Sequence record: PQ898602.1
Strand: one strand, 5' to 3'
Length of the DNA: 64,000 nt
Within the stretch, counting starts at the first letter, position 1. Each line of letters starts with the position of its first letter. The position numbers were made by a program, and so were the translations under genes. Under the pieces are notes generated by a model, which saw nothing but the letters and a program-made list of their open reading frames with translations, ran no database searches and was not told the origin of the DNA. Shown one piece after another: positions 839-1,249 of the stretch.

Positions 839-1076
839 CGTTCATCCCATGTTAGAACTACTTTTCTATTCTAGTATGGCATGTGCTGATGCAGATGCTC
901 TAATGTTTAGAATCAAGGCACAAAAACATCTTGAACCTAAAATTCAAGTTGAACTAGTGGAGACCATTAAGGACTCTGTGCCAGAATGTAGGTACTACTG
1001 GGACGCAAACGACTGAAGGAACGGGGAAACGGATCCAGCGAAAGCTGAGAAGGTTCAATTTCACCAACTTCAGGAG
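839..1076 (+). ncRNA. Glutamine-riboswitch-like aptamer, copy 2 (Downstream-peptide/Gln-II-like), with nested ORF and pairing to the downstream RBS region
   Basis: CGTTCATCCCA (839-849) and TGGGACGCAAACGACTGAAGGAACG (999-1023); CTGAAG (1013-1018) is complementary to CTTCAG (1068-1073), which overlaps AGGAG (1072-1076). Confidence 0.7.
849..1016 (+). CDS. Small two-Cys protein nested in aptamer 2 (55 aa)
   Basis: Hand translation MLELLFYSSMACADADALMFRIKAQKHLEPKIQVELVETIKDSVPECRYYWDAND; below the track length cutoff; aligns with 613-813. Confidence 0.7.
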   Translation: MLELLFYSSMACADADALMFRIKAQKHLEPKIQVELVETIKDSVPECRYYWDAND

Positions 1077-1084
1077 TAAGACAA

Positions 1085-1249
1085 ATGAACACACTCAATC
1101 TAATCAAGAAGCAAATCGAGAAGGCATCTGCACTTCACGATGCACAGATCGCTAACACTGCATATCGTGGTGTTAAGTATGATTGCAAGCAAGGCGCTGA
1201 GGAAATCCATGGCACCTTCTGCTATCGTGGTCGCACCTACGTTAAGTGA
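1085..1249 (+). CDS. DUF4278-like small protein (54 aa)
   Basis: AGGAG RBS; two YRG motifs (TAYRGVKY, FCYRGRTY). Confidence 0.8.
   Translation: MNTLNLIKKQIEKASALHDAQIANTAYRGVKYDCKQGAEEIHGTFCYRGRTYVK

Follow-up and report, generated by a model that had tools for sequence, protein, structure and literature searches.

Glutamine riboswitches of type 1, also termed the glnA RNA motif, have reportedly been treated by Weinberg in 2010, Ames and Breaker in 2011, Ren in 2015 and Klahn in 2018. Their Rfam consensus (RF01739) comprises, in this order, CGUUCA, a hairpin, CGGAAGUA, the P3 helix and GAAGGAACG. The architecture of type 2 (RF01704), the Gln-II or Downstream-peptide class, is composed of a 5'-CGUUC, an A, a hairpin closed by UCC:GGA, the sequence CGC, a linker and a P2 helix, which in canonical Gln-II RNAs is preformed and contains a GGAACGG segment in its loop (PMC6698751). 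Published members of both types are ON switches (PMC6212724; PMC6698751). For the gifB riboswitch of Synechocystis, bases at the aptamer's 3' edge were postulated to pair with the ribosome-binding site (RBS) without glutamine and to be withdrawn upon ligand binding, thereby creating an ON switch (PMC6212724).

The leader analyzed here lies within a stretch of 64,000 nucleotides from the Synechococcus phage S-SCSM2R (PQ898602.1), referred to as the window, and all of its features are located on the plus strand. We consider it likely that it constitutes two glutamine aptamers, one nested in the other, with an integral expression platform that can adopt two states. Based on sequence comparison and structure modeling, an outer type-1 (glnA-like) aptamer would carry an inner core in the loop of its P3 helix. 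Like type 1, the phage RNA has a putative CGUUC:GAACG P1, a UCC:GGA hairpin followed by CGN, the loop E halves AAGUA and GAAG around P3 and a linchpin after GAACG. Unlike type 1, however, its P3 loop appears to hold a second aptamer core, a complete translated gene can be accommodated in either of its hairpin loops, its predicted linchpin is a C:G pair in place of the G:C of the consensus, and its putative anti-Shine-Dalgarno strand is formed by the 3' strand of P3 together with loop E. With type 2, it shares the binding-core sequences CGUUCA, CGC and GGAACGG, the lack of loop E in the inner core and perhaps the genomic setting, type 2 preceding short genes of the YRG/DUF4278 type in marine picocyanobacteria, whereas it scores at most 29.6 bits against a threshold of 33, lacks a P2 hairpin enclosing GGAACGG and would adopt a nested rather than a pseudoknot topology. 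Similar to the gifB platform, bases at the aptamer edge would mask the RBS without glutamine, following an ON logic, but in gifB this role falls to the linchpin C68 and the bases that follow it, a postulate derived from one sequence (PMC6212724). The phage anti-Shine-Dalgarno strand, by contrast, is situated upstream of GAACG, and both alternatives have comparative support. There are also leaders with two side-by-side cores for one ligand; the phage leader equally has two cores, but these appear to be nested and to share P3.

The leader heads a four-gene phage operon (ORF0-ORF3), which is annotated in PQ898602.1 as part of five short hypothetical genes with petE and thyX on either side and has counterparts in 422 cyanophage records. 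It is preceded by a sigma-70-type promoter (565-593; TTGACT at 565-570 and TATAAT at 588-593, with 11 of 12 matches), which in relatives shows the same arrangement and lies directly 5' of CGTTCA, placing the predicted transcript start at around position 600, just 5' of CGUUC. ORF0 (613-813; 66 aa), a full-length member of phrog_6471, is located wholly inside the loop of the outer hairpin and replaced by a short hairpin in compact relatives. The GenBank CDS starts at ATG 580, within the promoter. In other phages, the annotation begins with ATG 613, the start of the conserved frame of 66 codons. In a divergent ORF0 family (L140, L152, L161, L167, L192), the frame continues through GGA CGC AAG to a UAA stop codon in the loop E strand AAGUAA, yielding the C-terminus IGRK. 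ORF1 (849-1016; 55 aa), a full-length member of phrog_504, makes up the inner hairpin's loop. Next come ORF2 (1085-1249, start codon ATG 1085; 54 aa), the putative regulated gene, which encodes a DUF4278-like, full-length member of phrog_545 with two YRG motifs and a Pfam DUF4278 score of 18.2 bits, below the cut-off of 25.3, and ORF3 (1354-1518), a full-length member of phrog_6192 with one YRG motif and a weak DUF4278 match. An intrinsic terminator (stem-loop 1507-1531 plus T run) closes the operon, which ends by position 1538. Metatranscriptome contigs are confined to positions ~549-1483, with the flanks uncovered; they cannot show a 5' end and represent weak evidence for the transcript, because the sequencing runs were chosen with this stretch and the flanks differ among relatives. 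Contigs from environmental RNA libraries join position 848 to 999/1000 via TT, TTCG or a 10-nt loop, as in compact relatives, indicating that phages whose inner hairpin carries ORF1 and phages whose inner hairpin lacks it share the same samples.

For the comparative analysis, we gathered 80 IMG/VR loci through ORF2 and added further loci with DNA patterns that fixed one strand only and, at one position, disallowed the usual base, such that the partner strand was seen blind; for P3 variants, only the 5' strand was fixed and the 3' strand remained blind. Covariation was counted in 176 related phage loci, with the numbers representing haplotypes rather than events. The loci fall into four layouts, in which both hairpins are short, only ORF0 is present, only ORF1 is present, or both ORFs are present, as in the window. 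The short hairpins of the compact forms covary freely.

All segments on which the original prediction was built lie where it had placed them (CTGAAG at 1013-1018, CTTCAG at 1068-1073, AGGAG at 1072-1076, ATG at 1085, CAGC-GAAA-GCTG at 1036-1047, AGTCG at 824-828 and CGACT at 1010-1014). In a single sequence, a complement of five or six bases at such distances is by itself not beyond chance. The pairing between 824-828 and 1010-1014 is nevertheless, on comparative evidence, a genuine conserved helix, which corresponds to P3 of the outer aptamer. Its strands AGUCG and CGACU, also paired by RNAalifold, occur in 13 combinations among the 176 loci, and 96.9% of the haplotype cells are paired, as compared to 79.5% with shuffled partners, with 0 of 5000 shuffles performing as well. 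Compensatory changes on both sides are seen at three of the five pairs (825:1013, 826:1012 and 828:1010). AGUCG:CGACU is found in 74 loci and AGUCA:UGACU in 60, followed by AAUCG:CGAUU (13 loci), AGACU:AGUCU (8 loci), GAUCG:CGAUU (7 loci), AAUCU:AGAUU, AGUCU:AGACU and AUUCG:CGAAU (3 loci each) and rare single departures. The pattern scan did not retrieve any variants of C827; C827:G1011 is thus invariant and uninformative. In the Rfam alignments of three relatives (L072, L200 and L145), the AGU...ACU segments correspond to the type 1 P3, with a loop of 37-40 nt.

The elements surrounding P3 complete the predicted outer aptamer. Its P1 would be formed by CGUUC (602-606), invariant in all loci, and GAACG (1019-1023), a pairing that is aligned by Rfam in compact relatives and also predicted by RNAalifold. 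Since the P1 strands are invariant, they show no covariation, and the choice of partner rests on the covariation of the inner linchpin and on RNAalifold. A point against the model is that, in the window, this helix has to span 417 nt containing two translated ORFs. The outer hairpin pairs 608-615, which contains the start codon of ORF0 (613-615) and a bulged C612, with 809-815, which overlaps the ORF0 stop codon TAG (811-813). It covaries across the 200-nt ORF0 (UCC:GGA, UCU:AGA, UCUCAC:GUGAGA, UCUUAUG:CAUAAGA), and its shuffle test gave 55/5000 across ORF0 and 0/5000 in compact forms. The hairpin is followed by the linking strand CGC (816-818), whose C818 is predicted to form the linchpin with G1024, based on the published architecture (PMC6698751) and the Rfam consensus; G1024 itself follows the 3' strand of P1 (together 1019-1024) in the Rfam alignment of relatives and in RNAalifold. 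The next segment, AAGUA (819-823), forms the 5' half of loop E; it is invariant and aligned by Rfam to the type-1 consensus segment CGGAAGUA in relatives. The 3' half (1015-1018), adjacent to the 3' strand of P3, reads GAAG in 107 loci and AAAG in 69. This G-to-A change is presumably compatible with loop E. The nine bases of the P3 3' strand and the 3' half of loop E (1010-1018) are identical to the anti-Shine-Dalgarno strand.

The second helix proposed in the original prediction, 1013-1018:1068-1073, is conserved as well and covers the Shine-Dalgarno sequence of ORF2. Its 3' strand is part of CUUCAGGAG (1068-1076), which contains AGGAG (1072-1076). The most frequent combinations are CUAAAG:CUUUAG (65 loci), CUGAAG:UUUCAG (40 loci), CUGAAG:UUUUAG (19 loci) and CUGAAG:CUUCAG (11 loci), alongside others, and 98% of the cells are paired, as compared to 18-76% when the partner is slid. 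The pair 1015:1071 in 163 loci is G:C (68 loci), A:U (69 loci) or G·U (26 loci) but never A·C, with each state found on 10-13 different sequence backgrounds. C1013 tracks P3 rather than the sequestor, as AUAAAG retains G1073. A haplotype-level shuffle test of the sequestor was not significant (606/5000), because G·U pairs are allowed. Overall, the comparative evidence for this helix is good, although weaker than that for P3. The segment 1004-1090 has a folding energy of -22.3 kcal/mol (z = -3.28), with 1 of 200 shuffles folding as well, and the sequestor represents its minimum free energy (MFE) structure. In this fold, the helix extends to 1010-1018:1068-1076, its six Watson-Crick pairs being followed by a tandem G·A (1011·1075 and 1012·1074) and a final C1010:G1076, so that the entire AGGAG would be buried. 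When 602-1100 was modeled without constraints, the ensemble had A1072, G1073 and G1076 in paired form.

Aptamer and sequestor are separated by a variable insert (1023-1065), which is predicted by folding to close with a stem that uses G1023 and G1024 (1023-1028:1059-1065) and exists in short and long forms among relatives. Its inner domain (1031-1056) holds the predicted GAAA tetraloop hairpin (1036-1047), whose stem indeed covaries in relatives (CAGC/GCUG, CUCC/GGAG, CUGC/GCAG, ACCC/GGGU). In the window (1030-1056) and four other loci (L006, L012, L046, L072), the region between aptamer and sequestor consists of the conserved insert ACGGAUCC, the covarying tetraloop hairpin and GAGAAGGUU; in other phages, a stem-loop of 12-15 nt takes the place of the ACGGAUCC...GAGAAGGUU insert. 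RNAalifold also proposed a pairing of an insert UCC with the GGA of the Shine-Dalgarno sequence, which comprises three pairs, shows no covariation and was not adopted. In 13 loci (L211, L215, L219 and L143 among them), both aptamer cores are kept, the downstream gene is preceded by an A-rich leader, and neither AGGAG nor the 3' strand of the sequestor is present, implying that they must use another read-out or none. As a separate observation, the start of ORF2, AUGAAC (1085-1090), is perfectly complementary to the GUUCAU of either CGUUCAU copy (603-608 and 840-845) and paired with it in the unconstrained MFE structure. This complementarity, which holds only for the MNT... family of ORF2 proteins, the MAQVTYRG family having AUGGCA, may provide a second mask on the ORF2 start codon or be due to chance.

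Because the 3' strand of P3 and loop E (1010-1018) also serve as the anti-Shine-Dalgarno strand and G1023 and G1024 are likewise shared, aptamer and sequestor are mutually exclusive. The competition envisaged in the original prediction is thus borne out, with an overlap that extends well beyond the two nucleotides assumed there. Since both helices are conserved, compete for the same nucleotides and in one case cover the Shine-Dalgarno sequence of ORF2, alternative pairings that gate access to its RBS represent the best reading. In one state, the outer aptamer would form through P1 (602-606:1019-1023), the hairpin 608-615:809-815 with ORF0 as its loop, CGC (816-818), loop E (819-823/1015-1018) and P3 (824-828:1010-1014), with the inner core in the P3 loop comprising the hairpin 831-835:839-843, the hairpin 845-849:999-1003 with ORF1 as its loop, CGC (1004-1006) and the linchpin G836:C1006. 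In the competing state, 1010-1018 would pair with 1068-1076, burying AGGAG, and the helix would be extended by the stem using G1023 and G1024. As the same bases are needed on both sides, formation of the aptamer must release the Shine-Dalgarno sequence. The phage RNA is predicted to bind glutamine, which would stabilize the aptamer, withdraw the anti-Shine-Dalgarno strand and permit the translation of ORF2. Glutamine thus probably turns on the gene at position 1085 and is expected, through the release of the Shine-Dalgarno sequence, to turn on ORF3 as well, albeit less certainly. What the analysis shows is the two helices and their overlap, the nested topology and the near-equal energies of the two folds. 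Among 30 compact relatives, nearest-neighbour energies, which omit loop E, tertiary contacts and the ligand, favor the sequestor by 2.3 kcal/mol on average, making it the better state in 26 of 30 cases; in the window, calculated with the same omissions, it is favored over the aptamer fold by 8.8 kcal/mol, which counts against the model.

The position of ORF1 raises the question of whether the sequestor chiefly serves translational coupling, with ribosomes that finish ORF1 at UGA 1014-1016 melting 1010-1018 and exposing the Shine-Dalgarno sequence of ORF2, and glutamine playing a minor role in ORF-bearing phages. The last codons of ORF1 (DAND) and its stop codon are indeed aptamer sequence. ORF1 represents several unrelated protein families, all of which end in DAND or a variant that tracks the changes in the RNA, and in nearly all ORF1-bearing loci, including at least three of these families, the stop codon (UGA or UAA) is located at 1014-1016, inside the switch, with the G1015A change converting UGA to UAA. 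In the window, positions 1000-1016 encode the ORF1 C-terminus (W)DAND and the stop codon, and changes in P3 alter the end of the peptide (DAQV, DAHD, DEND). In addition, G836 is followed by a two-base linker that reads AG in 76 of 88 ORF1-bearing variants, as compared to 5 of 19 compact variants. Together with the linchpin G and the G that ends GAACG, this AG generates GGAG (835-838), ten bases 5' of the ORF1 start. GGAG is likely the Shine-Dalgarno sequence of ORF1, whose ribosome-binding site thus seems to be provided by the inner aptamer core. However, 30 distinct compact sequences without ORF1 keep the sequestor, P3 and loop E, and the long-range hairpin closures across the ORFs still covary. 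We therefore regard it as unlikely that coupling is the chief function of the sequestor, although ligand control and coupling are compatible with each other.

Returning to the ligand-controlled switch, the aptamer fold would bury the start regions of ORF0 and ORF1, which lie inside aptamer helices (CGUUC and AUG 613-615 for ORF0, GGAG 835-838 and AUG 849-851 for ORF1), and a ribosome ending ORF1 would melt the sequestor. It is therefore tempting to speculate, although we hold this only tentatively, that one sensor gates three translation starts in opposite senses. The glutamine-bound fold would bury the ORF0 and ORF1 starts and free the Shine-Dalgarno sequence of ORF2, the reverse would apply without glutamine, and ribosomes ending ORF1 at UGA, within the switch helix, would superimpose an override that depends on translation. 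If true, the hairpin loops of this riboswitch would be working sites for translated genes rather than passive insertion points.

The nested topology invoked above differs from that of the original prediction, which comprised two separate aptamers of the Gln-II class, at ~812-848 and ~1000-1050, and interpreted 824-828:1010-1014 as a contact between them. These two segments appear to be interleaved halves of the nested pair, and the presumed contact represents P3 of one outer aptamer, whose halves are split by the inner aptamer and ORF1. The local closure required by the first of them (GGAC at 813 with AUCC at 845) is paired in 75.9% of cases, as compared to 75.4% after shuffling. Moreover, the 5' piece CGUUCAUCC is found directly 5' of the ORF0 start (602-612) and the ORF1 start (839-848), and the 3' pieces are located at the ends of ORF0 and ORF1 (813-836 and 1000-1024), indicating that the two supposed aptamers are junctions between halves rather than units. 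We ourselves initially considered a local P2 in the first unit (827-829:838-840), which was rejected: 829:838 is compensated in one relative (L027) and broken in two others (L072 and L011), and 828 also changes without 839.

The predicted inner core consists of a local P1 hairpin (831-843) found by RNAalifold, in which GAACG (831-835) pairs with CGUUC (839-843) around the loop G836-A837-G838, and a second hairpin whose 5' strand (845-849) pairs with 999-1003 and ends with A849, where the start codon of ORF1 begins. The latter hairpin covaries (UCCC:GGGA, UCCU:AGGA, UCUC:GAGA and, in compact forms, UCACC:GGUGA), and its 3' strand leads into the linking strand CGC (1004-1006; together 999-1006). 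Since the copies of CGUUC and GAACG are identical, and their pairing therefore not directly distinguishable, the choice between a nested and a sequential topology rests on other features. A sequential arrangement would consist of two Gln-II pseudoknot aptamers (602-606:831-835 and 839-843:1019-1023), with CUGAAG:CUUCAG serving as the second P2 and thus as part of the bound fold, so that glutamine would keep or make the Shine-Dalgarno sequence masked. This arrangement is in line with the position of GGAACGG in the loop of a preformed P2 in canonical Gln-II RNAs (PMC6698751), but in the phage loci 15-45 nt separate GAACGG from the candidate 3' strand of P2. The linchpin also argues against it. 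In one clade (L236, L238-L243), 836:1006 changes jointly from G/C to C/G, with C replacing G after the first GAACG and CGG replacing CGC as the second linking strand. This double change keeps the pair intact in the nested fold, whereas a sequential fold would acquire two linchpin mismatches, and the pseudoknot tandem was rejected as the main fold on this basis. Evidence to the contrary comes from nine loci, in which the second linking strand is CGA or CGG and 836 lacks a compensating change. Furthermore, the 5' strand of P3 is preceded by AAGUA and its 3' strand followed by GAAG, as in the loop E of type 1, which places the first CGC beside the second GAACGG; in a sequential arrangement, the first unit would have AAGUA but neither GAAG nor a P2 of its own, the local pair 829:838 being broken in the two relatives mentioned above. 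RNAalifold, applied to the 30 distinct compact sequences, returned the nested fold unprompted, and on this alignment 99% of the cells are paired, six pairs show changes on both sides, and 0 of 500 shuffles match the covariation score. In each CGUUC:GAACG helix, the five pairs never vary, such that the choice of partner is based on the linchpin covariation of one clade, the loop E logic and RNAalifold. Together, the placement of loop E, the linchpin double change, the unguided fold and the covariation in the compact alignment argue for the nested pair, and published type 2 elements, being ON switches (PMC6698751), also speak against glutamine-dependent masking.

The Rfam models point in the same direction with respect to class. 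In the window, neither RF01739 nor RF01704 gave a match (E<=1 over 6 kb; E<=10 over 520-1400), and the same applies to the whole phage record and to six ORF-bearing homologous phage loci; this silence reflects the 201- and 168-nt ORFs inside the two hairpin loops rather than the absence of the motif. Compact relatives, by contrast, pass the RF01739 gathering threshold of 35 bits (L200, 46.2; L145, 41.1; L236, 39.1; L072, 37.8; L027, 36.8 bits), and three of them, scoring 46.2, 41.1 and 37.8 bits, are aligned in exactly the nested way. Matches of RF01704 to single units of compact relatives, a point in favor of Gln-II, reach 25.5-29.6 bits and thus stay under the threshold of 33 bits. Two features of type 1 are present, namely the hairpin after CGUUCA that is closed by UCC:GGA and followed by CGN (608-615:809-815 and CGC 816-818), which covaries, and P3 flanked by loop E (AAGUA/GAAG). 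The pseudoknot of RF01704, between the 5' CGUUC and GGAACGG in the P2 loop, was not recovered, as the 836:1006 covariation fits the nested fold and would leave two mismatches in the pseudoknot. The assignment to the Gln-II class is thus not upheld, and we consider two sequential pseudoknot aptamers very doubtful. In five loci (L252, L253, L261, L264 and L299), the second GGAACG is followed by a repeat ACUGAAGGAAAC, a terminator-like hairpin and a further CGUUCAUCCC unit, such that arrays of three or more units appear to exist. Finally, complements of 5-6 nt are common and positions 1000-1016 are coding in this phage, but a chance origin of the complementarities, or their origin as a by-product of coding constraints on the ORF1 C-terminus, can be counted as already refuted, because compensatory changes tie coding positions 1010-1013 to non-coding positions 825-828, ~186 nt upstream, and the same pairs covary where ORF1 is absent.

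Collectively, our results point to a nested aptamer pair in which both states of the putative switch have comparative support. The relay from ligand to translation in glutamine riboswitches has so far only been postulated from single sequences. The comparative support provides exact positions for compensatory mutagenesis. Owing to the nested design and the presence of whole genes in the aptamer loops, standard covariance-model scans miss this widespread class of phage riboswitches. By means of such leaders, cyanophages probably couple IF17-like (glutamine-synthetase-inactivating-factor-like) peptide expression to nitrogen status in the cell they infect.
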